Shown here: piece by piece, positions 624-62,890 of the stretch
Layout of the letters: each line of letters begins with the position of its first letter
How positions within the stretch are numbered: the first letter of the stretch is position 1
Origin: Marsupella aquatica
Lineage: Eukaryota > Plantae > Marchantiophyta
Length of the DNA: 64,000 nucleotides
Assembly: GCA_973895155.1 (NCBI GenBank)
Contig: OZ316898.1
Coordinates: 14,290,330 to 14,354,329 of the forward strand
Direction: 5' to 3'
Translations under genes and position numbers: made by a program
Notes under the pieces: model-generated
What the model saw: the letters and a program-made list of their open reading frames with translations, nothing else
Database searches by the model: none
Told to the model about the DNA's origin: nothing

Positions 624-3600
624 TCATACCATTGTTTGAAGATACTGATCCAAAGCACGTCTATCTATTGGATCCAACACATAGATACGATCCATAACCC
701 CTTCTTTCATGGTTAAACTAACACTAGCAATGACCATTTCAATATCCATCCATTTCAAATCAGTGGTATCATATCTGAATTCACTTTTGCTCTTACCAAT
801 AGGACTATACCAATTTAACAACAGTTCACAAATGTTACCTGATTGCCCTGCAAGTGGAGTTGGCCTATCCATCAAATCAATTGGTGACCGACAATTGCCC
901 CACCTACTGCCATACTTCTGTCTCATTTGGACAATCCGACCCAACCAAAAATATTTCTTACCTGCTGAGATTGCCTCCACCACAACCTTATTCTTTCCTC
1001 CCTTTCTTTTTCCAGATCTAGTACTTGGAGCAGGACTATCATCAGACTCAAATGCAATTGCACAATCAGTGCCAACATCAACAAAACATGAGTTAGGATT
1101 GACTTCTTGCACTTTTCTCTTGCCAGTACTATAGTATAGCACTTGTTTCACCCTTGTCAGCCTATCTTTTGACAAATGCGGATTTCCTACCAACTGGCTT
1201 ACCAGAGTGGATTTGTAAATCACCTTGCCTTCATAAGTAACAGTAGGCACTACCTTGGTACGATTCTGTACATTAGTTACAGCATGGACAACTGATCCAA
1301 ACACATGCCGAACTTCATGACCTAATGTCTCAAGCTCATCTGAGGGGTCTACATCAAACTGTATATCATCTCTGTGTACATCATCTGAATGCATCTCAGG
1401 AACAACAATGGGATCTGGTTCTGTTAACCATGCATCTATTCTATTCAGATCATCCTCAGGATCTTCCAATTCATGAAAATCTCCAGTTGGGCGAGGACCT
1501 ATGTCTGGTGGTTGGTGCTCTACTTGCTCCTCAGAATCATTGCAAACAATTGCTTCCTTCAGAACCACCTCTAGTGGCCAGGTCTCACTTTCCACAACCC
1601 AAGGACATGTCCACCATCTCTTTCTAGCTGCTGGTAAGGAACTTCGTGGAGACATCTGCAATTGATGCATAAGATCCTTAGCAGCAACAAAACCTTCTTT
1701 AAGGGCTGCAACCACTAATTCATTAGTCTCAATGAGAGAATAGTCAAGTAGATTTGGTGCTTCCTCCCCTTCCCCTATAGGATGAATCTTCCCCCATACA
1801 TGATCTTGTTTCTTATGTGAACGACCTATCTTCAAGCCTTCTGGTCCATATTCTAGGGCAGCAAGCCGGTTCAGTCCAACAGCACTATCCAATAGAGAGC
1901 CAAAATCATAATTCCGCTCATGGCCACTCATGCCTCCTACCTTGCTAAAGAAAATCTCACAACAATCTGAACCTAGCAAGTGGAAGGGAACACCTAGATG
2001 TGGGAACTTATCTCGAAAGGCACAAATTAACAGCACAATGAAATGACATGACATGTTAACATCATGAAAAGCCTGAATAGACATCATGTCTTTCTCAGTG
2101 TGTGCTGCAAAGTTCCCACCCACTGAATGGTCACCAAACCTCAACCACAATCTCCACAAACGTAGAAAGAATGAAACCTTGGATGCTAACACAATACGGG
2201 ACCTCAAATCATGAACTGGAGAAAAGAAAATATCTAAGTAATCTGCACAAATCTCCAAGTACAACTGAGTTCCTAAACTTCGTTCATGTTGTACATCTCT
2301 CCTCTCATACATATCTTTCAGACATTGCTGCACTCTTCTTGCTGCTATTCGTTGTGGACCTGCCCAATTCTGCCGGTCAGTCCTATTCACATCATCCCAA
2401 GCCATGCCATGTTCATGAATTGGATAATGATTGTAGACATTAGCTACATAAGATAAAGATGCATGTTGATCTCCTAGCACCAGTAAAGAAGACACTCTGT
2501 CTAAGGGGTTTATCATCTTTTTCCCATTATGAGGTTGGTCTTGGTCACCAAAGCCATACAAATCTCCATTTGGTAGAATTGAAACAGAGTATGTCCACCC
2601 TTCCCACCCAACTCCGTACCTTGGGTATGATCCATTCTGCCCTCTGTAATCTTCCAGCATCAGCTTTCGGCGACGTGCATCACCATCACTAGCATGTCCA
2701 AGCAAAGGGCCTACCATAGCTCTACAATATTCATCCCAAAAAGCCTTTAACTGGACCCAATGCTCTCGTACCCAAGAAGCTGTGAACTTATTACAAGTTG
2801 GAAGTGCACACACAGCCAATTTAGGTAAGGACTCATGCAGAGGATTCACAATCACAACTCGGGCATACATGCACTTGGGGCATTGTTCAAATGTACTTAC
2901 AATTTTATCATACCCCTCATCACCTTCACCAACTAGAATTTCCAAACCATAGGAGCATACATGCTGCTCTGAAGGTCCACAGAAACCAATGAGAGTATCA
3001 TACTTTGCCTCCCACCTGAAACACAGACATGCAATTTTTCAATATCACAGCAATTCCAGCCAAGTGCTACTTGTAAAGTCATTAAAAAAACAATTGGAAA
3101 AATGTCCAGTTCCAATTACCTAGGGCGTTCTTTGATCCTTGTTTCATCCTCAGCAAAGATAACAGGCACATCCCCCTCAATGCCCAATGAGTGCTTTGCA
3201 GCAGACAACACTCTAGCAATCTCCTGAAAGGTTTCCTTCCGTAACCCGGTTCGAAAAGGTGTGAGTTTTGCTCTATCACGTTTTAGGGTCACAAGGCTAG
3301 GGGCTGTCAAGTTTCGTGCAAAACAATGAGCAACTTGACGGCCCCCAAATTGGAACATAGCCTGAGCAATAGCTCGAGTCCTATTACTGTAACGATTACC
3401 TTTTGGCTTCCTGCCTAAATTGCGAGCTACATCCTTCAAGAAATCCCACAAACCCTCCTTACCACCAAATGCACCATTCCTGTGTCCATTCAAAATACTC
3501 CTAAGAAACAATCTCAAATCCTTCCTGTCTGCTGCAACTCCTAACAACTCCTCTAGTTTTCGTTTCCTGGTGCTCAAGGCACATACTTTCTGAGCCTGCA

Positions 3601-5200
3601 AAGCTAACAACCAACGCTCTTTTCGTCGCACAGAGTTCAGGTTGTGCACTTGATCTCTTAACTCTGTGTTGGTCAAATAATCCAAACGTATACCACCAGC
3701 AGTGGTTCGGCTCCCTCTGTGGACTACTGCTTCCGCTTCCCTGTGCACCCGTCCACGAAAATCATCTTCTAGTGTTATAGAATCACATTCACTACAAGTT
3801 AGATTTTCAAATCCTCCTCCATTCTGTGATAACCTCAAGCAATCCTTGTGTCTAAAACAGCCTGCTATACTCACAACACTCTCTCTACTTGGATGGAAAA
3901 CATCCAAGCAACAACTTGGCTCACAATGCCATGTAATTCCCCCAGACTGATCATCTAAAATGCCAGAAATATCATAAGATATACCCTTCCATAACAGTCG
4001 AGGCACACCTCTCTCTACCCATAATCCCCAGCAAAGCAAACTCAGACCAAGATCAACAGATTCACACACACCTGAACCTGAACCTGAACTGCTGCCTGTC
4101 CGGGACCCATCATCTTTAAAGAACTTCAAAATCCCGCTCTGACCAGGATGTAGGTCCCTAGAATCAGTCCTCTTTGGCCTGCCCCTCTTCCCAGACCTCA
4201 AGGCAAGCATTTTTGTGTCATGCCTAGTCTCCAATGCATCCAAGTGATCTCGACTCACTAAGTGTGTCCTCAAATTGGGCTCCAAGGTAAGCTTCTTGGG
4301 GCACAAGTCAGTGTGAAGCATTCCACAGACAGTACATCGAACCTTAAACAGGAAAGACCTGTTTACATACTCAGGAGTACTGGGATCAGGAACAATAGAG
4401 AATAGTTTGCCATCATCCCCAAGCTCAGCATTCAATCGTTGAACTATCTCAACACCTACTTTGATGGCGTCTGCATGATCATATTCTGGCTTCTCAGAGA
4501 TGTCTGCTACCTGAACCAAAGTAGAAGGAATGCCCCTTCTCCGACAATAGTTATCCTTGTGCTTATTGAAGACCAAGTGTTTGGTCTTAAAATTACTAAA
4601 GCAATTGGAGATGGATTTAGGGTTCTGAGAGTTGTCTGCATTGCCATAAGTTTCCCTACATTCAAGACACTCCAGATGCCCTCGAACATCTGTCCCCTCA
4701 TCCCAGGTACGAATTCTCCAATTGTGATCACCATAACCCTTCTTATGTACCCATTTCTCTAACCTCATCCACTCATCTTTCCATAGCTTTGATGGGACAT
4801 CTCCCATCAATTGTGACTCAAAAGAAGCCCTTACAGGGGAGGGTGCTAGTGCCGTTGGCCCCAGTTGTGGTGTCCCAGTATTTGGACCCAATGATGCAGG
4901 AGTGCAAGGATGACAGGGTACTGGTGGGATCCTCCCACCATCTCCAAGTTCTTGTTGTACAACAATAACTCTTCCATCCAGCTCAGACAGATCAATTAAT
5001 TTCTCATGTACAAGTTTCACTCGACCAGGAAGTCTCTCATCCCAAAAATCAAAGTCAAAGTCTAGAGTAGAGGCAATACGAGCCCTAAAATCATGTAGGG
5101 TGTGTCCTTCTTTGAATGACAAAACACAAATTGGTAAATCAGCCTTGTCATCCCCAACTTTGCGTATTAATTTAACAGAGTTGGGTTTAGGGGCTGCCAT
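624..5200 (-). CDS. P-element/THAP9-like DDE transposase, 2 exons (5200-3120, 3015-624), 1490 aa, apparently intact
   Basis: A GT..AG intron at 3119-3016 (104 bp) joins the 694-aa and 773-aa ORFs in frame, giving VIFAEDETRIKERPR-WEAKYDTLIGFCG. P-type motifs follow in order: DET, ASDGD, QDQPHNGKK..N (D-x2-H), DRQN, LGSDCCEIFFS. The N-terminal half has C2H2-like fingers (CLEC..H..H, CTVC..H..H). Confidence 0.85.
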
Positions 5201-5695
5201 TGCAATACAAATCTAGAACATGCATAGCACCATTGCTTTTGGAGTTGATAACAGAAAGACCTGCACAAATACATTTGAAATACACACAAGGGAAACACAT
5301 TAGGATCTTCAAGAGATGCAATGACAACATACACATTCTCATGTAATGTACATAATGTCAGCATACATTTAACAATAGAAGTGCTAATAGGCCAAAACAC
5401 TTTATAATGCAATCCATCATACATGCAAATGTATTCAGTGAAAATCATGATATACCGCTAAAGTTGGATAAAATATCTTTGGACAAAATATCCTTTTCGC
5501 CTGCTTTTCTAACAATTCCCGAAGTTTAGTGCTTCTGCTCATCAAAATGCAGCACTATTAGTGACCTTAATTATGACAAAATGTCAACACTAATAAAATT
5601 GGGTACTACCACCCATGATGCACCTTAAGTATGTGCCTTGCTCATACCCCACTAAGACGTTGAAACCTAAGTAATAGGTTTGTTCATTATTCAGA

Positions 5696-6370
5696 TCATT
5701 GGAGCCATGAAATGTGGTCCCTGATTGGAGTCTTGAGGTGTGGATCAATAGGATGACGGGGGCAATAAAACATCTGTCGCTGTTGTCCATGTGCTTCATG
5801 GTCCCAGATGTCCCTATCATGAGCGAACCCTTTGCTTTTGATCATCTGGAGACAATCTGTATGCCAGGCATTTGGACATCGTAGACATTGTACCATGTTC
5901 TTGACCATCTGACCCTCAAGACTCTGATAACATGTCACACATGTATGCAGTGGGCAGGACTTTGCATCAGCTACCAAACACCCAAAGCAATAAAATCGTA
6001 CACAAAAACGATCAGAGCATTTTCGCACAATTGTAGGTGACGGTCCCACAGTGCGGCACCCATAACACATGGCCTGGTCCTGGTTACAATTTGGGCAAAA
6101 CCATGGCTTCCCTCCATGATGGAGGGGAAGGACTACACAGGGGCAAGAGTCATTAGGGGCTTCATCTCCAACCACATAATGAAATTGCCTGTGACATGGC
6201 CCATCACAAATTACCAACTTCCCACCATGCTCACAAATTGCACAAACATGAGGGCTAGTTTGTAGAATCTCTTGCTCAGAGAACAACGGAATACGCAATA
6301 CCTCTTCCAAAGAGGCTCCTCTGTCAGAGGACTGTGTTGCTTTCTTTATGTTTGAAGTCCTTGTCGGCAT
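5696..6370 (-). CDS. EDM2-like composite (tandem) PHD-finger protein, 224 aa, transposon cargo
   Basis: Motifs CAICEHGGKLVICDGPCHRQFH, WFCPNC..CYGC, CPLHTCVTC, QCLRCPNAWHTDCL and YCPRHPIDPHLKTPIRDHI follow the order and spacing of the EDM2/NSD-type composite PHD region. Confidence 0.8.
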   Translation of the reverse strand: MPTRTSNIKKATQSSDRGASLEEVLRIPLFSEQEILQTSPHVCAICEHGGKLVICDGPCHRQFHYVVGDEAPNDSCPCVVLPLHHGGKPWFCPNCNQDQAMCYGCRTVGPSPTIVRKCSDRFCVRFYCFGCLVADAKSCPLHTCVTCYQSLEGQMVKNMVQCLRCPNAWHTDCLQMIKSKGFAHDRDIWDHEAHGQQRQMFYCPRHPIDPHLKTPIRDHISWLQ

Positions 6371-6686
6371 GGTTCAACTGCAATCATCACAAAGCACATC
6401 ACATATGAGGGGGACATGATGATAGTGAGCAATCCATAGACAAAGATAAGGTTAATCATAGCACCTGCTCCAATGATCTGCAAACCTCCCTCCCAGATGA
6501 AGTCAACTACACAGTGCAACCTGAACACCCACCAACCAAGACATACATAAATACAATGCCAGCTTGCAAAACTTTGCCACATAATGGGAATGAAAAATAT
6601 TCTCATATATCATGGATGGTACAATTGCAGCCTTGCAAACAAAGGCCTAGTCATATATGAACAACGCATCCATGTACTATCAAGGA

Positions 6687-7085
6687 CTACAATGTCAAGC
6701 ATCCATGGGTTGTAACCTTAGCTTGATCTGATATACTATCTGGGGCTACAATATCAAGCTCAGTTGAATGTGGAATACTATCAGGGACTACAATGTCAAG
6801 CGTGTCCGGGATGACAATCTTGCGTAAAAGACACTCATTTTGAGGCCAAATGGTTGGCCTTATACAAGAGCACTTCCAACGACGTGTGACAACTTTGCCA
6901 TGCTTTCCCATGTATGTCCTAGTAACAAGCCTTCCACGCATTTTCAAGCAGAAGCAATGGAACCATTCAAAATTCCCATCACCAACCCTGCACTTGACAC
7001 AAGGTTCACACCAGCAGCATTCATCTGGATGCTGCAGAAGGAGCTTCTCATAATTCGCTTCTAATGTAATGCCCAATATAGCCAT
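6687..7085 (-). CDS. Small Cys-rich protein, possible degenerate ING-type PHD finger
   Basis: CCWCEPCVKC...FEWFHCFCL...RWKCSC resembles the EWFH-x2-C...W-x-C signature of PHD fingers. Confidence 0.4.
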   Translation of the reverse strand: MAILGITLEANYEKLLLQHPDECCWCEPCVKCRVGDGNFEWFHCFCLKMRGRLVTRTYMGKHGKVVTRRWKCSCIRPTIWPQNECLLRKIVIPDTLDIVVPDSIPHSTELDIVAPDSISDQAKVTTHGCLTL

Positions 7086-8319
7086 GGCACTATTTTTTTA
7101 TACTCGGTGAATGGCCAGACGATTAGACGTGCAATGACAGGCAACTTACAATTCACTAGGTACACTATGTGTTCTAGCAAACTGCTTCACCGCAAGTGTT
7201 GGTGCTCACTGCTGCAAGCGCTGATGACAACCTCTACAATTCCTTTTGCAACCTGTGAACAAAATTGAAACCACCATTCAATTTCTAAGTTTCAAAAACT
7301 TCCCATTACATGAAGACAACCAATTGGCCATGCATGTTACTACAGCAATAAAATAATAACCCAATCGCTCAACAGACCTGAATAGCTAACCTGAATAGGA
7401 TCAAGTTCAGAATCCAGAATGGTAATGCCCTTGCCCAGAAGCTTGAGAAACAAAAGAGAATTTAAAATCAAGCACGAGCGTCATCCACGTCTTGACCAGG
7501 CCCGCCACCCAGTATGGCTGGAGGCTGTGGTCCCCCCTGGCTGAGTAAACACTTAAAGAAGTCTTCTCTTCTAGATGACTTAAAGAAAATTGCAGGAACC
7601 AGCCAACGGGACACCAAGGCATGTAATAGAGAACCAGATTTGTGCGGGTGTGTGGGGGACGACAGAAGTCAAGTTACATGATTTTTTTCCTGGGGTCCAG
7701 CCCATGGATGGAGATCATGTAAGGTGGTCAATCATGGCAAGTGCAATCATTGGAGACCTGTACTCGCGGTTACTCTAACGATGCATCCAAAAAACATGTG
7801 CGTCAAGTCGTCGATGCGGACACAGAAGGAGAGATGAGTATGGACAACGTCGAGACAAATGACGACAATACTGAGCTAGTATTCGGCTGGGAAGTTGGAG
7901 CTGGATCTCAGCAGTGGCTCCAAACCTTATCTGCGAGGGCATGGCGAGCTCTGGAGGACAAAATACTCAAAGAGCTTATCGCCATTCACGGAGCTCAGAA
8001 CAGGAATTTTATAGTTGAAAAGCTAAACGGGCAGATCAGGTGCTTCCTCGTCTATGACCGCTACCAGATCGACTCTAGGTGTGCCATGCGTGATAGATTT
8101 GGGCGTCAAATAGTAGCAAGCAAGCAAGTACGATCGTCAAAGTAGGCAGCGCCTACCTCCCGATTGAGCAACGCAGCAATGCAGCTCCAATCCTGGCACT
8201 CCGGTTTGAGATATCGCAACACTCCCTGCAGTAGCCACCTCCCGTTTCAGCAAGCTAGCAGCTCCCGTTTTAGAAAGCAGCAATGCAACACTCTCGACAC
8301 CCACCTCCCGGAGCGCAAC

Positions 8320-9180
8320 ACTCTTGCTCGATCCTTCACTCCCGGGTTCACTTCAAGCAGCAGCGCAGCTACAAAGTCTCGCTCTCCCCTTCACTCCCGG
8401 GTTCACTTCAAGCAGCAGCGCAGCTGCAAAGTGTCGCTCTCCCCTTCACTCTAATCAGCACACGCAACTGAGAAGTCTCGCTCTCTCCTTCACTCTAATC
8501 AGCGCACGCAACTGAGAAGTCTCGCTCTCCCCTTCACTCTAAGCAGCAGCGCAGCTGAGATGTCTCGCTCTCCCCTTCACTCTAAACAGCAGCGCAGCCA
8601 GGAACTCTTGGTCGATCCTTCACTTCAAGCAGCAACGGCAACAGCACAGCCGAGAGCGCAACACTCTCGCTCTCCCCTTCACTCCAAGTAGCAGCGCTTC
8701 ACTCGATCCTTCGCTCGATCCTTCGCCGAGAACTCTCGCTCTCCCCTTCACTCTCGCTCTCCCCTTCACTCCTTCGCTCGATCCTTCGCCGAGAACTCTT
8801 GCTTGATCTTTCACTCCAGCCGCAGCAGCAACGCAGCTCGATCCTTCTCTGAGAAATCTTGCTTGATCCTTCACTCCAGCCGCAGCAGCAACGCAGCTCG
8901 ATCCTTCACTCCAGCCGCAGCTCGATCCTTCACTCCAGCCGCAGCTCGATCCTTCACTCCAGCCGCAGCTCGATCCTTCACTCCAGCCGCAGCAGCAACG
9001 CAGCTCGATCCTTCACTCCAGCCGCAGCAGCAGTGCAGTCGAGAGCACAACAGGAGTCGATCCTTCACTCCAGCAACAGTGTAGTCGAGAGCACACTCTC
9101 GCTCGATCCAACCTTCACTCCAAGTGCAGTCGAGAGCACACTCTCGCTCGATCCGACCTTCACTCCAAGCAGGAGCACAA
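8320..9180. repeat. Subterminal minisatellite array (core GCTCGATCCTTCACTCCAGCCGCA, 24 bp, plus related 40-60 bp units)
   Basis: Directly visible tandem units built on (C)CTTCACTC and GCAGCAGC motifs. Confidence 0.9.
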
Positions 9181-10019
9181 CTGGTTTAGACCCCGTTTAG
9201 GCCATTTGCTGCAAGGTACAAACAAAAGAGACTCTGTTGAGGCAAAGAGCGGGTGGGGCCAAAGGGATAGTGGAGGGAAACGACACGGGAGGGACTGACA
9301 AGGGCCAATTGAGGTAAACGAGACACGTTAAACAGAAAAATTTCAAACTTAATCCCGGTCAAACCCTAAACGTGAGTCCCCATAAAACCAGATCATTCTC
9401 AAATTCTTGCCATGTTAACATCTTAGAAAAATTAGGAAAATATATTGGGAATGTTATGTGTGCCACGTGTACCAATGACATAGTGACACGTGTACTTTAC
9501 ATAGTCCGACACAAAGACCCCCTAACTTCTTTGTATGCCTTCCATCTACAAAGTCAAAAATATTAATATCCCTATTATTCTTACAAGTTGTCCAACATAT
9601 AAAGTTGGCCCTATTGTTCTTACACAAATCTTCTTAAGTCTTCCGAGAAACCCAATTAACGGACCCTATACTTCGTCGCACGTGATATGAGATTTTCGCG
9701 GAGTGAGACCCCCGAGAGTTTGCTTGACCTTTCGCTTGCTACTTTCTTCTGATGTATTATTTTGCTGACATTTGAATAGGAGGAAGGCGATGCTCTGAAG
9801 AAACAGTGGGAGGACGTTGTTGCCTGGCTAAATGTTTGGATTGAGCTCATTGTGGAGGTCACAATTGTCTGTACACATTGCGAAGGTCTGTATATGTACA
9901 TTGCTATTTTGTTGCATTCATAATCATTGCTTCAATTTGTAATGTGCTTCAACATCGTTGCCTTAATGTTTGTTGGTGCCTCACATTCATTCCTGCATTC
10001 ATTCCGTCCCGGTTGTGGA

Positions 10020-10470
10020 ATAGGGTTGACTATGGATCGCGAGGCCGGGAGGACTACTGGGTGTGCAAGTTTGGAGCTCCATCTCTTTGTGGGAAATTGT
10101 AGGACTATTGTTGTGCAGCGCTACTGCAACATTGGAGCTCTAGTGGATTGTGCCGGAGGAGGCCGAGAGGACTGTTGGTGCAAGTTTGGAGGCTCCCCAT
10201 TTTCTTTGTGAGAAATCAAAGGTCGATTGCTGTGCGCTGCCGCCATTTTGGATCTTTAGTCGACTGTGGAGGTCGGGAGGAGTATTGTTGCTGCGAGTTT
10301 GGAGCTCCATTTTCTTCATGAGAAATTGGAGGATTGTTGTTTGCTGCCACAACCTGGATCTCTAGTTGACTGTGGAGGCCGAGAGGACTGCTATTGCCAC
10401 AAGTTTGGAGGTTGGGAGGACTGCTATTGTCGCGAGTTTGAAGGACTGTTTGGAGGTCGGAATGACTGCG
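10020..10470. repeat. Degenerate tandem repeats (GAGGACTG..GCAAGTTTGGAG units)
   Basis: Recurring GGAGGCCGAGAGGACTG and AGTTTGGAGCTCCAT motifs. Confidence 0.65.
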
Positions 10471-10962
10471 CAAGTTCAAGAGCCTGTCATTCAAGACGTT
10501 CGCTACTGCTAGTCAACTTTGAGCAGTGAAGGTTAGTGGTCTATTGCCTAATATTTTCACGCTGTGGTGCGTCCCATGGCTCCCTAAACCCAAGAAACCC
10601 CCCAGCTCAAGCCGATTCCCGCAGGTTTCGTGCTTGGCGAGGCCGTTTCCGCGGCTTAGCGGCATGGGACGCTGCTAACCTTCTACTACTACTATTAACA
10701 TTTTACACACATATACTGGACAGATCCTTCATCGGGTCATGAGATACGTAGCCGGCCTAATATAGGCCTTCCCCTGTCTTCCCCTGTCTTCTTGTTAGGT
10801 ATGTTTGGATTCCGCCGCCGGAATGATCCCCAATAGGCTTGGTTAAGCCGCTAAGACCTCTCTCAGCTCGACACATCCAACTCTCACTCCCCTGCTTACT
10901 TTCCTTCCTTCTGTTGATGTGGGCACTCTTCACACAAGTTAATGCGACACACAAATAGCAAA

Positions 10963-10985
10963 ATGACTCATTCTGACTGAGTCAT
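10963..10985. promoter_or_regulatory. Inverted pair of TGACTCA (GCN4/AP-1-like) motifs in the LTR
   Basis: ATGACTCA-ttctgac-TGAGTCAT is present in all four LTR copies, ~200 bp upstream (minus strand) of a TATA-like CCTATATTAGG near 10760. Confidence 0.4.
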
Positions 10986-11471
10986 ACCATGCACTTGCCA
11001 TACAAACAGTACATCTCATACACAAGTTCTGCGAACTAAGCCGTGAGGCCAACTCTATTCAGCTCTTAGGCATGAGGAAACATGAATATACACAAGGGTC
11101 ACTGTATGACTAACCGAGAGCTTCTCATACTACTTGATCCCAGCCCGGCTGGTGCAAACTAAAAACTTGCTAAAGAGGCCCTGAGCTCCCCGTTGCCCAG
11201 GTACTTATCCTGGTAGTGGATCCGCCATTCTTTGCATCGTAAGCCTAATCTACTTAACAGTAATCTACTTGCCCGAATCTACCTATGTACAGCAAGGCAG
11301 GAGCACAAGTGTTGCTCCTACCAGTGGGACCGCAATCCCACTAAGCTAAGTGTCAGGGCCGCTCCTGGTTCTGATCCTAATCCTAAACGTGGAGATCCGC
11401 GCCCGCCCTGCCCACTCACGCCTCCTCCCTCCACGTCCGCCCTCCCTAAAAGGAACGGCGCCCTTGCACCG

Positions 11472-14400
11472 TCACGACACCGGTGGTGGATCCTTAATGG
11501 ACGCCCCCAACGCTTCCTCCTCAGCCACTGCCGTAGGTTCATTCTCTGACAGATTACCTGCACTTGACTGAGTCAACTCTCCATCGGCCTGACTGGGTCC
11601 ACCTTCGGCTTCAGCCTCGACACCGGCCTCGGCAATACCCACGGCTTCGGCCTCCCCTTCCCCTAGGGTAGTTGGATCCCTAGCCGTGACCCTGTCTGGG
11701 GTCGGTGCTGGGTCTACCTCCTTGATCACCACGGCCTGTGAAGTCGTATTACTCCTTGACCCTGAAGGTTTCCGCTTCTTCTTCGTTGGTGGCTCGGCAG
11801 CTGGTCCCTTCCCCTTCCCACTTACTTTCGGCACTGGTGCAGGTGGCGCGGCTTGTCCTTCGGCAATTACCACCCCTGGTAACTGGTTTGTCCCAACAGG
11901 AGATGGACCTGCTGCAGCTAAGCATTTAAATACTGCGGCTTGTTTCTTTAGCCGCTCTGTTTGGTTGTCGGCCCGCCGCTGTAGGTTCTCCATCTTCCTC
12001 GTGATTTCCTCCAACTCCTCTTGGGTTTCATCCAGGTCCTTACGTGCCCCCTCCAGCTCGTTTTTGGCCTCCTCCTGCTCCCTGTGGGCTTCCTCCAATT
12101 CCTTCTTCAAGGTAGCCCTCTCCTCCTGGGTTGCTCTTAGCTCCTTGTCGAGCTCTGCAATGATGACAGACTCCATCTGGTTCATCTTGGCGTAAGTCTG
12201 TTCGAGCATCTCGTCCTTCTCCCTTAGGTCGGCCTTGAAGCTGGCCGTCAGGGACGCAAGCTCCTGCTGCAGTGCCATAATCCCTTGATAGGATTTCCCT
12301 AACTCGACCTCCTTTTGCTCAAGGGCTCCGCGGATTTTCTCGAGCTCCCCTTTCAACGCCCATTCCTTTCTTTGGGTCTCCGCCATGGCCCGGCTGTTGG
12401 CTGTTATGTGGGCCTCCTCTGTATTCTTCAGCTCTTGCTTCCACTTCTCCCTCTCTTTGATCATGTCGGCCAACTCTTCCTGCGTCTGAGTCAGTTTATC
12501 CTTGATATTCTGATTATCAGCCTGCGCGGTGTCCAACTGCCCCTGCATGATGTTCAGCTCATGTCGTTTAATCCGCAGTTCATCTTGGGCTTTCTTGGCC
12601 GCCCTTAGATCTTCAATCTCGGCTTCCATCCTCCTAAGCCGCCGAATGACCTCGTCCTTCTTGCTTCTCTCTAAAGCCACCGCTTCTTCTAATTGGTGCT
12701 TCTCCAACTGCTCCCTATGGAAAAAGGGTCCTACCTCCAATTCCTCTCCAAAGATGCCGAGCGCAAGTTCCCCACACATCTCACCATACTCCATGGCTCT
12801 ATTCTTAGCGTAGGTGGAGTAAGTAGAAGTGATCGGCATCGCCCATCGTGGCCTCTGCTCCCAAGCCGTCCTGCGGATCTCTTCAATCGTGGCTAGAGGT
12901 TTGCTTCCTTTTTCGGCTAGCCGCCTGATGTCCTCCGGCCAATCTCCTCCTGGTAAATCCTTTTCCTTAGCCAGGGCGGCCTCCTCCTCCTGCTTGATTC
13001 GCTCCTGAAATTCCTGCACCGTCTGTTTTATGCCGTCGAAGCTCGGGGGAGCAACATCTGGTGGGGGAGACTCAGGGCTACTCTGTTGGTTGGGGTCCCC
13101 TCGCACTACCCTTGGAAGTGTGGGGACAAACTGGCCACAGGTCCTTACTCCTGGAACGTGATGGTCCAACCCATAGCCGGAATTATCATGGCTGCAGTCC
13201 TCCACTGCCTCCTCTACCTCTTGGACGTCCGGCTTCTCCCTCTCCTCTTCGTCGGTAGGAGCTTCAGGCAATTCTGCCTCAGATTCGGAGCTTGAGGTTC
13301 CCACGTACATTCGAACACCTGGCTTGGATTCCGGCCTGATTCTCTCCTTGTCTCCAGCAAAGGGGTTTTCTCTTGTGAGCCGGTGTAGGCCTACCTCTGT
13401 AGTAGTGTCCTGCATTGTTGCCATTGCCGTTGTTGTTGCCGATGCCGATTTCTTTTCTTTCTCCAGTAGTTTCAGCAGACTCTGCATGCCTGGTTGTTGC
13501 ATCGGCAAGTCTTCCTTCCTGGGCCTAAACACCTGCTCGATCGTAGGACTAACAGGTGGTTGAGGCTTCTCAGCCAACGGCCTCGGCGTTGGAGCTTCCT
13601 CGGGTGCCCTTACCTGCAGGGGAAGTACCGGGGCAAAAGTCTGACCTCTGGCATACCGGCACAACAGCGGCATGTGATAGCCAAGCCGCGACACGCTCCC
13701 CATGCCGATTACCTGCTGCTCCTCCTTTAAGATCTTCTTCAATTGGTTGAGGAGGTACCCGTTGTAGTCCCGGCTTGGGTCTGGCCTTTCTGCCAGATAG
13801 ACCTGTGCCTTGCCGATCTCTGCCCTCGGCAAGTTACAATGCATGGTCACCCGCAAGAAGTCGATTATCTCTCCTATGTGCGGGTTGGTGCAGGTGTTCC
13901 GGAAGAAGCCATTCTTCGTTGATGGCCCGGGGAACGACCGGAACTCCTTGTCAGGCAAGGTCTTCCTGGTATCAACTTTGGTCTTATTGCCTATCGGCAA
14001 GCCAAACACTTCGGCAATTACCTTGGGAGTAAGATAGAAATCATTCCCATATATCCTCGTGCAATTGGTCTCGGGTTCCCATGACCCCACGAATTCTAAT
14101 AGGTCTGACTCCGGTACCTCCGGCTTCAGCCATGGTAATCTTACAAAGGCCTCCAAGCCGGATCCGGCCATGAAGCCTTGGTACTTCTTGGTCTGCATGG
14201 CCGTAAAGCATGCATCCTCCTCCCGTGCAAAATGTAGTTGCACCTCCACCGGTAGGGTTGCCGCCCAGCCCTTCCAGGTGTCATCCCTGGTTGGAATGGC
14301 CTTGATGGGATCGACCTCCTCCTCTTCGGCTTCTCCCTGCCTCCTGCTCTGCTGCTCGGCTGGCCTCTTTGGTGCCGCCAACCTCGTTCTTTTTGCCGGG

Positions 14401-14789
14401 GTGGCTTCATCGTTGACGGCCCCCTTCCTCTTCATCTCTGCTGCCGTGGAGGTTTCTCCTAGCACCATTGCTTGGGTCCACCTTTCCGTGCTACCCTTTA
14501 ATTCCCAGTGTATGTCGTTGCAGTTCTTGATGGCCTCTCGGATGCCGACGACGCTGTCTTTGCAAAACAGAAGATCGTCGAGTTGATTGGAAGTAGGCGT
14601 CCACAGGAACTCGTCCTTGATGAGTTCGCCTCCTAAGAAAGCCGTCTTCTGCAGCTCCCACAATCGAGCGAGCTCTTGCCGTTCTCGAGCTGCCCTTTCT
14701 GACTCCTCGTCCTCGTAAGTCTTGATGTACTCAGTTGCCCATTCGAACAGGCATCCCCAGAAATGTGCCGCTTGATTGACGTTGCTCAT
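11472..14789 (-). CDS. LTR-encoded accessory protein, 1105 aa (consensus 1191 aa from ATG 15047): PMD/Transposase_32-like domain + long coiled coil + low-complexity tail
   Basis: Uninterrupted ORF inside the LTR. Motif GLEAFVRLPW..LLEFVGSWEPETNCTRIYGNDFYLTPKVIAEVFGLPIG; ~270-aa E/K-rich heptad region. The N-terminal extension is blocked here by TGA at 14871-14873 but is open in the other copies. Confidence 0.85.
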   Translation of the reverse strand: MSNVNQAAHFWGCLFEWATEYIKTYEDEESERAARERQELARLWELQKTAFLGGELIKDEFLWTPTSNQLDDLLFCKDSVVGIREAIKNCNDIHWELKGSTERWTQAMVLGETSTAAEMKRKGAVNDEATPAKRTRLAAPKRPAEQQSRRQGEAEEEEVDPIKAIPTRDDTWKGWAATLPVEVQLHFAREEDACFTAMQTKKYQGFMAGSGLEAFVRLPWLKPEVPESDLLEFVGSWEPETNCTRIYGNDFYLTPKVIAEVFGLPIGNKTKVDTRKTLPDKEFRSFPGPSTKNGFFRNTCTNPHIGEIIDFLRVTMHCNLPRAEIGKAQVYLAERPDPSRDYNGYLLNQLKKILKEEQQVIGMGSVSRLGYHMPLLCRYARGQTFAPVLPLQVRAPEEAPTPRPLAEKPQPPVSPTIEQVFRPRKEDLPMQQPGMQSLLKLLEKEKKSASATTTAMATMQDTTTEVGLHRLTRENPFAGDKERIRPESKPGVRMYVGTSSSESEAELPEAPTDEEEREKPDVQEVEEAVEDCSHDNSGYGLDHHVPGVRTCGQFVPTLPRVVRGDPNQQSSPESPPPDVAPPSFDGIKQTVQEFQERIKQEEEAALAKEKDLPGGDWPEDIRRLAEKGSKPLATIEEIRRTAWEQRPRWAMPITSTYSTYAKNRAMEYGEMCGELALGIFGEELEVGPFFHREQLEKHQLEEAVALERSKKDEVIRRLRRMEAEIEDLRAAKKAQDELRIKRHELNIMQGQLDTAQADNQNIKDKLTQTQEELADMIKEREKWKQELKNTEEAHITANSRAMAETQRKEWALKGELEKIRGALEQKEVELGKSYQGIMALQQELASLTASFKADLREKDEMLEQTYAKMNQMESVIIAELDKELRATQEERATLKKELEEAHREQEEAKNELEGARKDLDETQEELEEITRKMENLQRRADNQTERLKKQAAVFKCLAAAGPSPVGTNQLPGVVIAEGQAAPPAPVPKVSGKGKGPAAEPPTKKKRKPSGSRSNTTSQAVVIKEVDPAPTPDRVTARDPTTLGEGEAEAVGIAEAGVEAEAEGGPSQADGELTQSSAGNLSENEPTAVAEEEALGASIKDPPPVS

Positions 14790-15162
14790 ACCCTCCTTAG
14801 GTCGATCGTCGGTATCTATTCTCTCCCCGAGTGCTTGCCTAAGCAGCTGACAGTAGTTGGCCTCCCGTAGTCATCTGCCTAGTTCGTGCTCGCAAATGAG
14901 CCACCATCTCCTGCAAGCGCTCCTTACCCCTCTCCTCTGCCGGTCCTTCTTCCCGTTGATCCTTCCTAGCCGCCGACGCTTAACGCGCCCTAACCCTAAT
15001 CGGGTTTTCACCCTCAGCCTTACCTCCGGCCTCTGCCCGGGTTCCATGGTTGCCCCTAATTGTTTATATTTTCCTTGTTTTGTCCGTATACTAAGGTGTT
15101 CCTAGGGTGCCTTCCTGCTTTACCCACTTAACCGGCCGAGTGATTCCTGTCTAGGCATCACA

Positions 15163-25509: not shown

Positions 25510-26273
25510 CACGCCCTTGGAGATTGCTCATCGTCTTTCCTTGTTGTTTGTCTGGGTTGACACATGTCCTGCCTCATCTGTGCTGGCATTGTACATCCTG
25601 CTTGTTTGTTGTCACTGCCTATTAGTAAACTGTTCATGGTTGTTACTCGGTACTTGTTGACTATAGCAGTTTGGACCTGCTCATCGCTTGCAGTTGTTGA
25701 TTGTAAGACTGAACAATGTCACAGTATAGGTCAACATTATTGTTTGCAAGAGCTACATTTTAAATTTGGGCTGGCATCCCCCACTCGCATCCGGAAGGAC
25801 ATTTGTCATCTTCATTTTCCCCACGTTGTGGAGGCTTGTCTCCATTGTCACACCCAAACATGTCATTGTTGTAGGGGAGGTGACTCAAACATGTAGTGCA
25901 GATTGAAGCACAGTATATGGCAAGAATGGCATGGGGCGGTTGCCTAGCGTGGAATACTTGTCATTTCATCAATGATTGTGTCTGTGGTGGGACACATCCA
26001 GCATCTGCCCATGATGGTGATGCCATTCAAGTTGAGCTGACTTCTGATTCTACATTGCTCACATTGCAGGATGGCCGGATCAAAGGAGCCCACAGGGAAG
26101 TGATGCCCCTGGTGGAGGCTACTGGCTGTGATTGCTGGTGGACTGTTGCTCCTTCTGGTACATCACATGCCTGCCCCTAATTTTTGAAGGTAATTTTGCA
26201 GATCTTGTTCAACATTGCACACATTGCTCATCAGCTGCTAGATCCAAGATTTGGGCATAGGGAGCACCTTCGT

Positions 26274-26905
26274 ATGGATCCCCCTTGTTGTTTTCACTGT
26301 GACAAGGGAGGAACTCTTTTGTTCTGTGATGGCCCTTGTGGTTGCCATTTTCATTATGTAGTTGATGGCCACAACCCCGACAAATAAGATGGCCATGGAC
26401 CTACATGTCAGCGGATTGTCAGGTCATGATTGGGCTGCAGCTTGGCTTTGTGACCTCTGTCAGCAAAACAAAGGAAGATGTTTTGGTTGTGGACTCCTTG
26501 GCAGAACCTTGAGACCCACCACAGATGAGCCCCTTGTGATCCAGTGTTCTCATGATGACTGCTACTCATATATTTTACCATGTGGACAGTCTCCGAACAC
26601 TTATGCGGTTGGGGGAAATGCCTTTCACCCACCATCTAGATAACCCTGATGCATGCACATCCTGATGCTCTTATATGCCAATGACATTACTGTGAGGTTT
26701 GTAAGGAGTATCGGGAGGGCATTTGGGACTTTGTCCAATGTCGTAGATGCCCTCGTGCATGGTGTCGTGATGAAGGACCAACAGCAGATAGGCACTTGAG
26801 GAGAAGGGTAAGGGGCCAAGACACCTGGGACATTGGACAGTGGCGCATGATTTACTGTACTTGCCATGTCATCCCTGAGGGTTCTGATATCCCTAGTACA
26901 CATGA
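26274..26905 (+). pseudogene. Frameshifted EDM2-like PHD gene of P-like copy 2
   Basis: CFHCDKGGTLLFCDGPCGCHFHYVVDG, WLCDLCQQNKGRCFGC and VQCRRCPRAW are homologous to 5696-6370, and the gene sits in the same position upstream of the transposase. Confidence 0.8.
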
Positions 26906-27284: not shown

Positions 27285-27773
27285 ATGGCACACCTAGGCA
27301 TGAGCTCTGTCAGATTGGTAGAAAAGGGTGGGGAGGGAGGAAAGCCTGATACGCCAATCTGTGTCATGTCTTTCAAAGAAGGGCAGACTCTGGCAGATTT
27401 CCGTCTGAAATGTGTTGGTGCAATAGAGTTTGACTTTGATTTTTGGGATGAGAGGTTGCCTGGTCAAGTCCGGCGCTTTTCAGAGAAGACCGTTGGGGTG
27501 ATTGAACTTCAAGGGACAATTTACGTGATTGCACAATTACCCTCAATTGCCTTGCCTACTAAGAGGGTCACAATTGGTTCCTCTCATTCATCTGTTGCCA
27601 CTATGTCCAATGTGGCAGGCACGATTCCATTGACTGAAGGACAAACATAAGGGGTGCCAGTACAGGCTATTGTACAGCCTGTCACAGGCTCCTTTGAGTC
27701 TCACCTCATGTCTAAGGCTGCATCAAATACCTGGAATGATGAGTGGTTGAAGCTACAATCCTGGGTAAACCAG
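27285..27773 (+). pseudogene. P-like transposase copy 2, N-terminal part
   Basis: PICVMSFKEG..DFDFWDERLPG and SFESHLM..WNDEWLKLQSWVNQ align with the N-terminus encoded at 5200-4750. Confidence 0.9.
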
Positions 27774-28099
27774 CACAAGGAGGATATGCATGGTCGAGGA
27801 GTTGGGGATTTCCCCACCTGACTTGGTGAATCAGTGTACCATAACAAAGAAGTGGGGATTCCGGACATCTTAGGGAATTTGGTTGAAAATACCCATGCTT
27901 TCCCATACATAACGAGGGATTTGATACTTCTAGCAGTTCGACGTTTCCCTGGGGTAATTTGCCTATGTGTCCCACAGGCGTGACATTTGGGGCGTTTCCC
28001 ATAATATACCCAACTACATAAGGGTTTAGCGCCTCCGCATTTCCCCACATTTGCCTGTTTATTTGTATAAGCCGGAGGCAGTTGGCATAATCCAGGTCC

Positions 28100-58719: not shown

Positions 58720-59313
58720 CTAGATGAGTTTTAGCTAAGGCTCTCTTCGGTGCTTGAGTCAGTTAGGCAGTGACACTCTTACTGTTCGTTTACTTGTCAG
58801 TGCCACTCTCGTTTCCTCCCGTTGTGATTTTAGTGCAGCGGGACAACGATGAGACTAGGAGGACAGAGCCTGAGTGGGTCTTTCCTTGCCACATATGTAC
58901 CTGTTCGAGCCTCCTGCGGGAGCATTATGAATTGAACACTTCATCTTTGAATCATGTCCACTGTTTCTCATGTCCACTGTTTCTTTGGTATTCTTTCTTG
59001 TGTTCTTTTGTGTGTGTTTAGGGTTTAGGTTATGCACTTGCAAGACACACCGAATGATTACCCTAGGGACATAGGTAATTTACAAGCATAGCAGCCCGTC
59101 CACTACAAGGAGATTTGGTTCCCTACTAAATATGGGACAAATACCTTACCATGAATCGCTTTGATAAGAGGGGAATGAATTCCCAACTCATCTTCTGGAA
59201 ATTACCCCCAATAGTAAGGGGGCGGGGAGCATGAGGTACGTTGGGGTTAATTTCCCTACTTACCCCATATATTCCCCTCTTTCAAACTCCTAACCTTGCA
59301 GATCTTCCTTGTG

Positions 59314-60690
59314 CAGAAGGGCTTTGGTGAGCACAAGTGGAGAGTGCGGACGTGGGATGAGGGAGAGGAGTGTCGAGGTCATCTAGAATATCAGTGATTT
59401 CACTAACTCTGGACATTCTTTTGTCCAATTTTTGATCATGAAATTTCCAACACCAATTATTCTTTTCCCTATAACTTGAGTTCTAGAGTACATTGTATGT
59501 TATGCATAGATTTATTAGGAGTAGCTTGTTAAGCTTCATATATCTTGATCAAAAAATTTCAAATATGATATTGATAAGTCTCATATTTATCTACAATTTA
59601 GTTGATTTCAATTTCCAAAAAGTTGTTATGAAATTTCCAAATCGTTAATAATATTCCAGAATTAGTGAAACTATTGATGAATGCTTAGAGTGTAGGAAGA
59701 CTTATGGGAATGCAACCAATTCACAGGTGCTCAAGTCCATTGCAAATTTCTTTAGCAATTTCAAGACAAAGCACATGACCAACCCTAAACACAAGGACAA
59801 TTGGTGGAAGCAAAGGGGTATACCTGGGGCTTTGGTAACGGCTGCTGACACTATACAACAGCCATTGTTTGATCATAGTATGCAAATAGGGGCTGGTGTG
59901 GAAATAGTGGGAAAGTTGAATGCAGAGGTAGGTGGGCCCATGGTAGAAGTGTTCTCTATCACACCATCTCCCACTAATCCAACATTTGCACAGAGGTCAT
60001 TCCTGTTTAAGGTCAGATGCATGTATAGTCTGTGGCAAGCTACATACTGACATGTGCCCTAAGAAATCCAATTTGGAACACAATTTAAGGCAACACCTTG
60101 TCTGTCGGGATCATATGGATGCACTTGAGAACGTCGTCACCAGTACCCAGGCTGCACTGAGGGCAGGGAAGAAGGGGAGACCAAGGAAGCCTGATGCTCA
60201 TGATCTGTTTCCATCTCAAAATTCTATTCTGAATTTCTTTAGAGAGGACAGCTCTGCTGCAGGGAGCAGTTTAGGCAGAGGTGGGTTGTATTCCTCCATT
60301 GAGCCAAGTTTAAGTTTGCTTTGTTGGGGTTTGTGGGAGTCAGAGGTGAAGTGGACAAGGGATTCTATGGCTGTGAAAGGCATACTTGATGATCAAGAGG
60401 GAGGAAATGTGTCAGTGGGATTGTGACCGTACATCCTGTGCTGAGGTTTTCAATGTAACTAGTCAGTTAGTTGTTGGTATATAGGGTGTTTTAGGCACAA
60501 GCAATGTCACAAGGTGTCCATTAATGGAGGTGGTTTTGAAAACCTCACTTGCACTCTATGTGATTCTATAAAATGTGAAGATGATTTTTGTGGCAGGGTG
60601 CATAGGGAAGCGGAAGCATTAGTGCAAAGAGGAGACATGACTACACAGGGTGGGATGAGGTTGGCATACAAAACCGAACTGAGGGAACAC
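59314..60690 (+). pseudogene. P-like transposase copy 2, continuation after the CACTA insertion; truncated at ~60690
   Basis: KGFGEHKWRVRTWDEG..HLE/CLECRKTYGN, FSNFKTKH, SFLFKVRC, LSLLCWGLW and GGGFENLTC align with copy 1. Confidence 0.9.
59390..59678. mobile_element. 289-bp MITE with ~28-bp TIRs and a 4-bp TSD
   Basis: Ends ATCAGTGATTTCACTAACTCTGGA / TCCAGAATTAGTGAAACTATTGAT; TSD GAAT at 59386-59389 and 59679-59682; removal restores HLE-CLEC. Confidence 0.88.
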
Positions 60691-61719
60691 ATGGCAACAA
60701 ATAGATCTCTCATCAGCTCATCATAAGATCAAGATGGCCCAGCCCCATCTCCTCCATCACCCGATCCTCCCTCCCCCACCATCTCTCCTCCTCCCCAATT
60801 GCTCTTCTTGTCTCAGCCTTACACAAAAAGCCACAAAGAACATTGTCAAAAGGAAGGCCCAAAGCGTGGGTTTTCGCACCTGCATCGGGACTTCAGGTTT
60901 TCAATAACTCCTGCAAAGTCCGATCAATCCCGCATCGGAATGTCCGATGCATAACGTATGGGATCTACAATTGGACATTGCGTTACGGGTTGTATTGGAC
61001 CCCTCATAGAATTCATTGGACCTCTTCAATGGCTTTCCCAAGTGATTTGTGATGCTTCTCCTTTGGGTTTTATATATATGGGAAACTTAGTTTTAAGGCT
61101 TAAATAATAAGGGGGTTTGAATTGGCCTGCTGTGTTGGGTAACTTGCAATATGAGTTTGGCTTGGATATGGGGTTTGGTCGGGTTTAGGGTATTGAAATT
61201 TTATGGCCGTGCTTGAATTCAGGTTTTGTAGGGCCATATATATACCTCAATGGGCTGGCGACCGTGTGCTGGGTCCTCTTGCAAGTTCTTTTTTGTGGAT
61301 TCAATTTTGGGGTTTGTACTTGACTTCAAATTTGTTTGGGGGAATATATGCTTGGTTATCCCTGACTCAAAACTTTTGGCTCATTTCTTCTCGCTCCCAC
61401 ATCCGCTTGCTCCCGAGCAGTCCACACTCTGTATGCATATTTGAATTTCCCAAGTCAGACTAGAAAAATAGGTGAGAGTCATATATCTTTTTGGAAATGA
61501 CAAGGATGAATCCCAAATGGGATATGACGTATCCGGTTTGGGATTCAATCTTCAAAAATCCAGTTTTGGCATGACAAAATATGAGAAAATGATGTTGGAT
61601 GCAAAGTGGGATACCGGATATGAAGCTCTTGGTTGAAAAATGCAGGAAATTTTAAAAATGGGATAAAGTGTTTAGGGTTTAGGGCTCCACTAGTGAATCA
61701 CATTCATTCAAAATCAAAA

Positions 61720-62890
61720 GTCACTTCCAAAGAGCTTTTTGATGTTGGTAACAGTCATCATGCATGACAAGACTACGTTGAAGCTGGATGCGGTGAAGGC
61801 TACAGTTATTCTTGCATAATGGAGCAAGCAACATCTATCTATTTGTGATGATGAGTGTCTTGTCTTAGTGGTTAGAGGTAGATCAACTGAGCGTATTGCG
61901 GATCAATCTAGGTCTAGATTTCATAACAAATCTAAAACTAAGTCTTGTGGTAAGAAGGTTCAATGTTGACATTGCCATGAGAAGGGCCACACCAAGTGGT
62001 CTTGCCCTTCTTTGACCAAGCAGAAGCGTCTAGGTACTTCTGATGGTGCATCTTCATCTTTGACTGGCATAGTGATTGCTAATCATGAGGATGGTGCTAA
62101 AGCGCTATGTATTGGTGTTGTTAATTGTGTGTATGACGATAAATGGATGTTGGATTTGGGTTCCTCTTATCACGTGTGTCCAACGTGTCTTATAAGTTTC
62201 AGTTCAAGTTCCTACCATTCTCATGAGATTCTTGAGTATGTACATTTGGATGTTTGGGGTCGAGCGCTGGAGCCGTCATTAGGTGGAGCCAAATATTTTA
62301 TGACGTTTGTAGATGATTTACTCTTGAATGTGTTGGTTGTACTACATGCTCGGGGGTTTCACTTCCACAAAAATGGCACATCACGTGCGACAAAGTATAA
62401 GGTCAATTTATTGGTTTGAAGGGAAGACTTAAGAATTTTTGTAGAAGAACAATAGGGTCCTTTAAATTCAATTTTGAGACTTATAAGAACATTAGGGTCT
62501 TTCTAACCAAATTTTTGGAATATTCCAAGAATATTCCAACTTTATAGGGATTGAAAAATAATATTTTTTTTCTTACATTTTAGGGGGTCCGAGGCCTAAA
62601 AACGTCACAGGGGATGGGGAGACATCCATATAGTGAGACCCCCGAGACTACATGATGGAGAAGTCTCAAGTATTTGAGATCTTCAAGGAGTGGAAAGCCA
62701 TGGTGGAGCTACAAATTGAGAAGGAGTTGAAGTGTGTTTGGTCAGATACGGTGGCGAGTATAAGTCCAATGAGTTTGACCAATTTGGTCAGGACCTTGGC
62801 CTCAAGTGTTGTTACATTGTACCGGAGACCCCGCAACAGAATGGAGTGGCACAACGGTTGAATCAGACATTACTGGAGGAGGCTCACTTT
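61720..62890 (+). pseudogene. Ty1/Copia remnant (gag knuckle, protease, integrase)
   Basis: HCHEKGHTKWSCP, WMLDLGSSYHVC, LEYVHLDVWG..SLGGAKYFMTFVDD, KSQVFEIFKEWKAMVE, GGEY, TPQQNGVAQRLNQTL. Confidence 0.9.
62349..62646. mobile_element. 298-bp MITE of the P-like family
   Basis: TIRs CTCGGGGGTTTCAC / GTGAGACCCCCGAG; 8-bp TSD ACTACATG at 62341-62348 and 62647-62654; both ends are homologous to the ends of the element at 1-9716. Confidence 0.93.

Follow-up and report, generated by a model that had tools for sequence, protein, structure and literature searches.

The window analysed here, the whole stretch of 64,000 nucleotides from contig OZ316898.1 of the liverwort Marsupella aquatica (positions 14,290,330 to 14,354,329), holds two elements of a P-like DNA transposon family. 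One of them, copy 1, carries an intact gene for a short protein made of PHD fingers immediately upstream of its transposase gene. The features of copy 1, from its 5' end, are:

9702..9716, minus strand: 5' terminal inverted repeat (TIR), 15 nt, CTCGGGGGTCTCACT read inward from 9716
6371..9701, minus strand: 5' internal region, with tandem repeats at about 8300-9200 and a Cys-rich ORF at 7085-6687
5696..6370, minus strand: stand-alone PHD gene, an intact ATG-to-stop ORF of 224 codons, product about 25 kDa
5201..5695, minus strand: spacer from the PHD stop codon to the transposase ATG, 495 nt, DNA without conservation relative to copy 2
3120..5200, minus strand: transposase exon 1, 694 codons (ORF 5200-3116, 694 aa)
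3016..3119, minus strand: transposase intron, 104 nt, GT-AG
624..3015, minus strand: transposase exon 2, with a predicted P-type RNase H core, a long insertion domain and a C-terminal beta-rich domain (ORF 2945-624, 773 aa)

A preliminary description of this DNA had reported an intact PHD ORF directly upstream of, and co-oriented with, the transposase. This is confirmed: both genes lie on the minus strand, the PHD ORF is open from ATG to stop, and the transposase ATG, at 5200, follows its stop codon after 495 nt. The PHD gene is situated 3,346 nt (about 3.3 kb) inward of the 5' TIR. The 15-mer of this TIR, inverted, is identical to the ends of a miniature element (MITE) elsewhere in the window:

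62349..62646, plus strand: MITE of the P-like family, 298 bp, with perfect 15-nt TIRs (CTCGGGGGTYTCACT) and an 8-bp target site duplication (TSD), ACTACATG

The 150 nt inside position 9716 are 76% identical to the 5' part (first 150 nt) of the MITE, of which the perfect TIRs and TSD suggest that the P-like family was mobile fairly recently. Copy 1 is longer than 9.7 kb, and its 3' end, and hence its own TSD, lies beyond the start of the window. Because the PHD gene is located inside the 5' TIR, and because a copy with a transposase of only 57% identity has the same synteny, the gene is part of the transposon, which agrees with the earlier attribution.

There are imperfect tandem repeat arrays at 8300-9200 inside copy 1 and at 10040-10410 just past its TIR, which give rise to long spurious ORFs on both strands. 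The Cys-rich ORF at 7085-6687 (minus strand, 132 aa) was rejected as a gene, having no Pfam match and no relatives and being unlike the Cys-rich ORF that precedes the PHD gene of L001, a locus described below. Cys-rich ORFs are found 5' of the PHD gene at 6687-7085 (minus strand) and 25564-26180 (plus strand) in the window and at 743-1177 in L001, loosely alike in a C-x-C-x2-C...C-R pattern; no homology was detectable among those of the two window elements and L001, and none had relatives in the databases. By eye, no BRCT or F-box gene was seen upstream of the copy 1 PHD gene among stop-free segments of at least 35 residues on the minus strand at 6371-9730, where the Pfam search covered ORF 7085-6687 only.

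The transposase gene consists of two exons with a total of 1,490 codons and is free of stops once spliced; the frame was checked on the joined exons, and searches and fold predictions were carried out for each exon. The splice junction, at which KERPR is followed by WEAKYDTLIGFCG (that is, AEDETRIKERPR by WEAKYDTLIGFCG), is colinear with the uninterrupted homologues P0012, P0014, P0022 and P0024. Exon 1, with homologues in L004, L005, L009, L014 and L015, encodes Cys/His-rich putative DNA-binding stretches and ends in a conserved AEDET motif that contains the candidate first catalytic Asp. In exon 2 the D of ASDGD and the E of SDCCEIFFS are invariant (alignment A1). The candidate catalytic triad, assigned by motif, thus comprises the acidic residues of AEDET (aa 684), the D of ASDGD (about aa 806) and the E of SDCCE (aa 1047), with a D-to-E spacing of about 241; this spacing is 228 in P transposase (PMC7776569). 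Relatives of exon 2 are encoded by the liverworts Riccia sorocarpa and R. fluitans, the fern Adiantum and many environmental assemblies.

No Pfam family, THAP and TNP-like families included, matched the transposase at E values up to 0.1 for exon 1 or up to 1 for exon 2; the THAP domain is reported to be confined to animals (PMC7776569). The relationship to P transposases is visible by fold comparison alone; the sequence profile of exon 2 had no match among PDB sequences. The top two Foldseek matches of the exon 2 model were both the Drosophila P element transposase (6p5a and 6pe2; probabilities 0.99 and 0.97, at E values of only 0.01), and re-alignment to 6p5a gave a Z-score of 12.7 and an rmsd of 4.6 over 231 residues (model residues 18-334, chain residues 241-534), the next unrelated match having Z 7. 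Neighbours found with a protein language model (Atlas) carry the TNP-like RNaseH_N, GBD and RNaseH_C families. From its modelled fold and 15-nt TIR, and from the 8-bp TSD of the sister MITE, the carrier is assigned to the P type, in line with the first description of it as a P-like transposon; short TIRs and an 8-bp target duplication are the P-element pattern (PMC7776569). With Drosophila P and vertebrate THAP9 it has in common a predicted RNase H core interrupted by a large insertion, the 8-bp TSD, short TIRs and MITEs (PMC7776569), whereas it lacks THAP, encodes a transposase of 1,490 aa that has stretches rich in Cys and His at the N-terminus and a beta-rich C-terminal domain, carries an extra reader gene and resides in a land plant. 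A review of land-plant transposons does not include the P superfamily in its list (PMC9033089).

The beta-rich C-terminal domain of the transposase (624-1100; exon 2 aa 618-762) resembles BAH domains, which are readers of histone marks: DNMT1 BAH1 with H4K20me3 at Z 7.0, and ORC1 and BAHCC1 at Z 5.3-6.1. The transposase may have a chromatin-reading domain of its own, at Z values low enough for the resemblance to be a mere common arrangement. P0056, a distant homologue, ends instead in a PTM/DIR17-type Tudor domain.

The product of the PHD gene, which is intronless, is predicted to be a triple zinc-module of the composite PHD type of EDM2 and NSD proteins, arranged as follows:

about aa 41-97: PHD1
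about aa 100-142: second finger
about aa 144-220: variant PHD with C-terminal extension

The Pfam family PHDvar_NSD (PF23004) was found at 33.1 bits (5.8e-8), above its curated gathering cut-off of 27 bits. PHD-1st_NSD (25.0 bits) and PHD_NSD (19.3 bits) were both under their own Pfam cut-offs, and the match to the PHD family was also weaker. The best match among PDB sequences was NSD2 PHD1-3 (E 4e-6), and the first finger is also similar to fingers of AIRE, TRIM33, CHD4 and PHF21A. Every family-invariant Cys/His position, the predicted zinc ligands, is kept in the window protein, which has the C-terminal signature HPIDPHLKTPIRDH. An AlphaFold2 model based on an alignment with 15 relatives has a mean pLDDT of 72 and disordered termini. 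Its top fold matches are multi-PHD binders of the histone H3 tail, with the PZP modules of JADE1 and BRPF1 at E values of 4e-5 to 3e-4. The model matches the PHD5-C5HCH tandem of NSD1, NSD2 and NSD3 at a TM-score of about 0.6 normalized on the target, and among these are structures determined in complex with H3 and H3K9me3 peptides (NSD3 PHD5-C5HCH). The TM-scores normalized on the query are low overall because the orientations of the fingers differ between the model and the solved readers. We infer that the PHD protein would bind H3 tails.

Many stand-alone PHD proteins of this family begin with MARPKxKAK, MARTK or MARSKQKAK, which may be compared with the H3 tail itself, ARTKQTARK; such N-termini were found in P0006, P0076, P0082, P0098, P0137 and P0212 (alignment A2). 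This N-terminus could be a mimic of H3 or simply a nuclear localisation signal. That of the window protein, MPTRTSNIKKA, is a degenerate version, of which the likeness to the H3 tail (4 of 9 positions) is at the level of chance, being reached by 809 of 2000 shuffled sequences.

A phmmer search of 1.8 billion representative sequences with the PHD protein returned 267 matches, headed by five short proteins with E < 1e-30 and followed by long proteins aligned over residues 41-222. The long matches include proteins named ENHANCED DOWNY MILDEW 2 (EDM2) in Neltuma, Mangifera and Selaginella, and the closest long match is Mp1g03210 of Marchantia. The named EDM2 proteins were matched over residues 41-222 at E values of 1e-14 to 1e-21, and a profile of the stand-alone family matched EDM2 proteins over the whole module at about 1e-40. 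The C-terminal motif YC.KH.ID..GTP.RDH, which had been read as an EDM2 signature, does indeed occur both in the window protein and in the proteins from Neltuma and Mangifera that bear the EDM2 name. A 90%-clustered database contains six stand-alone relatives of 213-304 aa that are 44-82% identical to the PHD protein, the closest being P0001 (82%), and a scan of metagenomes for PHD loci added one more short stand-alone member (L016) as well as EDM2-like transcripts. In most of the relatives the chain stops no more than a few residues from DHISWL, and the window protein ends 5 residues past the PHD module. The stop near DHISWL in most relatives indicates that the stand-alone form is conserved, so the gene had rightly been called stand-alone.

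In a 132-row tree rooted only by midpoint or outgroup, the stand-alone proteins group in a separate clade (SH-aLRT 89-94) that lies outside every long EDM2-like protein, and the same separation from EDM2 was obtained in a careful tree of 23 rows. No other EDM2 domain was found by Pfam in the 224 aa of the PHD protein; a DNMT1-RFD domain was seen in the EDM2 protein P0092. Beyond its PHD region of two and a half repeats, EDM2 has an RFD-like N-terminus, acidic and PGR domains, a domain resembling N6-adenine methyltransferases (ELP) and a Pro-rich tail (PMC7529245). The window protein and EDM2 are alike in the whole composite PHD module, including the YC.KH.ID..GTP.RDH tail, and both fall into NSD-type PHD families in Pfam; they are unlike in that the former has 224 aa rather than about 800-1,400 aa, belongs to a separate clade that is not nested in EDM2, and is transposon-encoded and intronless. 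With no other EDM2 domains and a separate clade, the protein is best described as an EDM2-type module and not an EDM2 orthologue. The preliminary description of an EDM2-type reader therefore holds for the homology of the module, to NSD (PHDvar_NSD, NSD2) as well as to EDM2 fingers, and not for orthology, which the domain content and the tree exclude.

The homology to the chromatin-docking module of EDM2 brings with it the idea that the PHD protein acts as EDM2 does. EDM2, the subunit of the ASI1-AIPP1-EDM2 complex that docks on chromatin, is a binder of H3K9me2 that brings ASI1/IBM2 and EDM3/AIPP1 to heterochromatin within introns to suppress proximal polyadenylation (PMC7529245). A transposon protein with such a role would dock on H3K9me2 and, like this complex, promote read-through to a distal poly(A) site, which would suit an element of more than 9.7 kb with internal repeats and an intron; alternatively, it would be a dominant-negative antagonist of EDM2. 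EDM2, however, acts through partners that are recruited by its other parts, and the PHD protein lacks every non-PHD part of EDM2 (PMC7529245). The branch of the stand-alone proteins is also outside the EDM2 clade, so the specificity for a mark need not be conserved. We regard such an EDM2-like role, whether as a pro-transcription factor or as an antagonist, as decidedly unlikely.

The second element, copy 2, is on the plus strand and consists of the following parts:

about 26226..26873, plus strand: PHD pseudogene, frameshifted twice and interrupted by one in-frame stop, in CPLH
27285..27809, plus strand: transposase N-terminus, aa 1-158, 39% identical to copy 1
59290..60693, plus strand: transposase continuation, aa 145-518, 53-60% identical to copy 1, with one frameshift

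The possibility that the window contains three elements was considered and rejected: the pieces at 27285 and 59290 are parts of one protein in the same orientation, split by LTR elements, which leaves two. The split (27809-59290) is due to about 31.5 kb of nested LTR-element insertions. A 4.6-kb LTR is present in four copies in the window (10563-15162, 21387-25509, 30478-35116 and, inverted, 38404-43006) that are 96-99% mutually identical. No 5' TIR of copy 2 was found; the end of an LTR element, at 25509, lies a short way upstream. The PHD-like stretch is 31-37% identical to the copy 1 protein, spread over two reading frames, and is a pseudogene because of the two frame changes and the stop inside CPLH. 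Copy 2 is dead. Thus, the order of PHD and transposase recurs in it as first reported, with the PHD-like stretch preceding the transposase at 27285, but its PHD gene is not intact. In the tree the pseudogene has a very long branch, and the AU test does not reject its grouping with copy 1 (p-AU 0.30). The transposases of the two copies are only 57% identical over 332 columns, which makes the linkage of PHD gene and transposase older than a deep split.

Among other P-like relatives, the PHD gene was found upstream of none of six, with 1.2-10 kb of upstream flank, versus two of two elements in the window. The six are L003 and L004 from Riccia, the Logan contig L005, L009 from JGI (with identical gene copies in L010-L013), and L014 and L015 from ENA. 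L005, with a transposase 58-65% identical, has an upstream flank of just 1.2 kb. The claim that the arrangement is ancestral to the family thus fails for the wider family: the gene is a lineage-specific cargo that transposition does not require. The transposase tree joins copy 1, copy 2 and L005 in a trichotomy, so the PHD gene may equally have been gained on the lineage of the window elements or lost in L005. L009, which is distantly related and comes from JGI metagenomes, contains at 5442-9961, as do L010-L013, nine small co-oriented ORFs of 50-259 aa without Pfam matches upstream of a transposase of 1,307 aa, and no PHD gene; these ORFs may be a different accessory set.

Relatives of the PHD gene in L001 and L007/L008 are upstream of and co-oriented with genes of another transposon superfamily, CACTA, each encoding an N-terminal Transposase-associated domain followed by a TnpD-like continuation; in L001, BRCT and F-box-like ORFs lie between the PHD gene and the transposase gene. 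These CACTA-borne genes are 46-50% identical to the window gene and like it in length, start region, stop and position upstream of and co-oriented with a transposase. They are unlike it in their carrier, which in the window is P-type, and copy 1 is without the BRCT and F-box-like genes of L001. In the careful tree the CACTA-borne members are in the starred clade, apart from the window gene and P0001, which indicates that the sharing between superfamilies is old and not a recent swap. The PHD gene appears, from sequence comparison, to be a member of a clade of stand-alone PHD genes that is old and that is carried in bryophytes by DNA transposons from two or more unrelated superfamilies (P-like and CACTA).

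This distribution bears on the proposal that the PHD protein is an integration-targeting subunit, which would bind the transposase or transpososome, tether it to a given H3 state and steer insertions to heterochromatin or other safe sites. The location of the PHD gene directly upstream of and co-oriented with a transposase gene at four independent loci is as expected of such a partnership, for which the chromodomain-integrase fusions of chromoviruses are a precedent (PMC3605345). The BAH-like fold at the C-terminus of the transposase (Z 6-7 to DNMT1, ORC1 and BAHCC1) hints at a concern with chromatin state, and the window consists of transposons nested within transposons. One PHD family, however, serves the unrelated P-like and CACTA TnpD transposases, which argues against a co-evolved interface, and six P-like relatives do without it. 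We consider targeting unlikely. The association with unrelated transposases, together with the absence of the PHD gene from most P-like relatives, makes action in trans on chromatin most likely, and no fixed subunit of the transposase. A transposase-independent role, in which the protein would occupy or compete for silenced chromatin, is thus favoured over a tethering subunit.

When the window gene is compared with L001, L002 and L007, identity is 57-67% at codon positions 1 and 2 and no more than 36-38% at position 3. Maximum likelihood dN/dS is 0.05-0.12 in these comparisons, with synonymous sites saturated, and 0.23-0.29 for the less diverged pair L001 and L002. On this evidence the PHD gene is under purifying selection, as measured across the stand-alone clade rather than within the P-like lineage, and the ratio is well under 1, as the earlier proposal of a stable accessory gene implies. 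The gene would be a functionless passenger if it were a captured or hitch-hiking copy, or if a host family had piled up in transposon-rich DNA; the pseudogene of copy 2 and the lack of a PHD gene in most P-like relatives are consistent with this. Saturated synonymous sites with dN/dS well under 1 are not, and intronless full-length ORFs, start region, stop and zinc ligands persist at 44-82% identity. The upstream, co-oriented position recurs in two superfamilies, and the copy 1 gene is inside the TIR. We find a mere passenger very improbable.

On a slender balance of probability, the PHD ORF is a functional accessory gene of the P-superfamily transposon that acts in trans on host chromatin, by anti-silencing or as a decoy. 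The protein would represent only the three-finger PHD cassette by which host EDM2 docks on H3 tails, and would bind H3 tails on silenced chromatin, including that of the element's own copies. As a reader that lacks effector domains, it would take up the sites of host readers and writers or compete with them there, which would keep the element transcribable. Which mark it would read, and what the element would gain from it, are inferences. A broader proposal, which we offer as possible though doubtful, is that a portable EDM2-type reader cassette has been exchanged between P-like and CACTA elements of bryophytes and long kept by them as a decoy or anti-silencing factor against H3K9 silencing by the host, with the MARPKxKAK tail perhaps serving as an H3-like pseudo-ligand.

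Mobile elements with chromatin readers of their own are, to our knowledge, mainly retrotransposons bearing chromodomains, and essentially the only proven anti-silencing gene of DNA transposons that we know of is VANC. The chromoviruses (Ty3/gypsy) resemble the present element in encoding a chromatin-reader domain (PMC3605345), but there the reader is a chromodomain joined to a retrotransposon integrase, whereas here a separate PHD gene is carried by a DNA transposon. VANC of the Arabidopsis VANDAL elements (Mutator-like) is likewise a separate, lineage-specific accessory gene of a DNA transposon, and it counteracts epigenetic silencing (PMC5735166, PMC10398659). It is, in contrast, a sequence-specific DNA-binding protein unrelated to PHD, and anti-silencing by the PHD gene is a hypothesis. 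Rehavkus transposases contain a PHD finger (PMC6446971), and a full-text literature search for EDM2 together with transposons returned no account of an EDM2-type PHD gene carried by a transposon.

Thus, an apparently intact P-type transposon is documented, with MITEs, in a land plant. A separate, selected gene that is the docking module of EDM2 alone, present in two unrelated transposon superfamilies, would be a natural experiment on what this module does on its own, and the PHD gene would give direct access to the ways in which transposons of early land plants cope with silencing of the H3K9 type.
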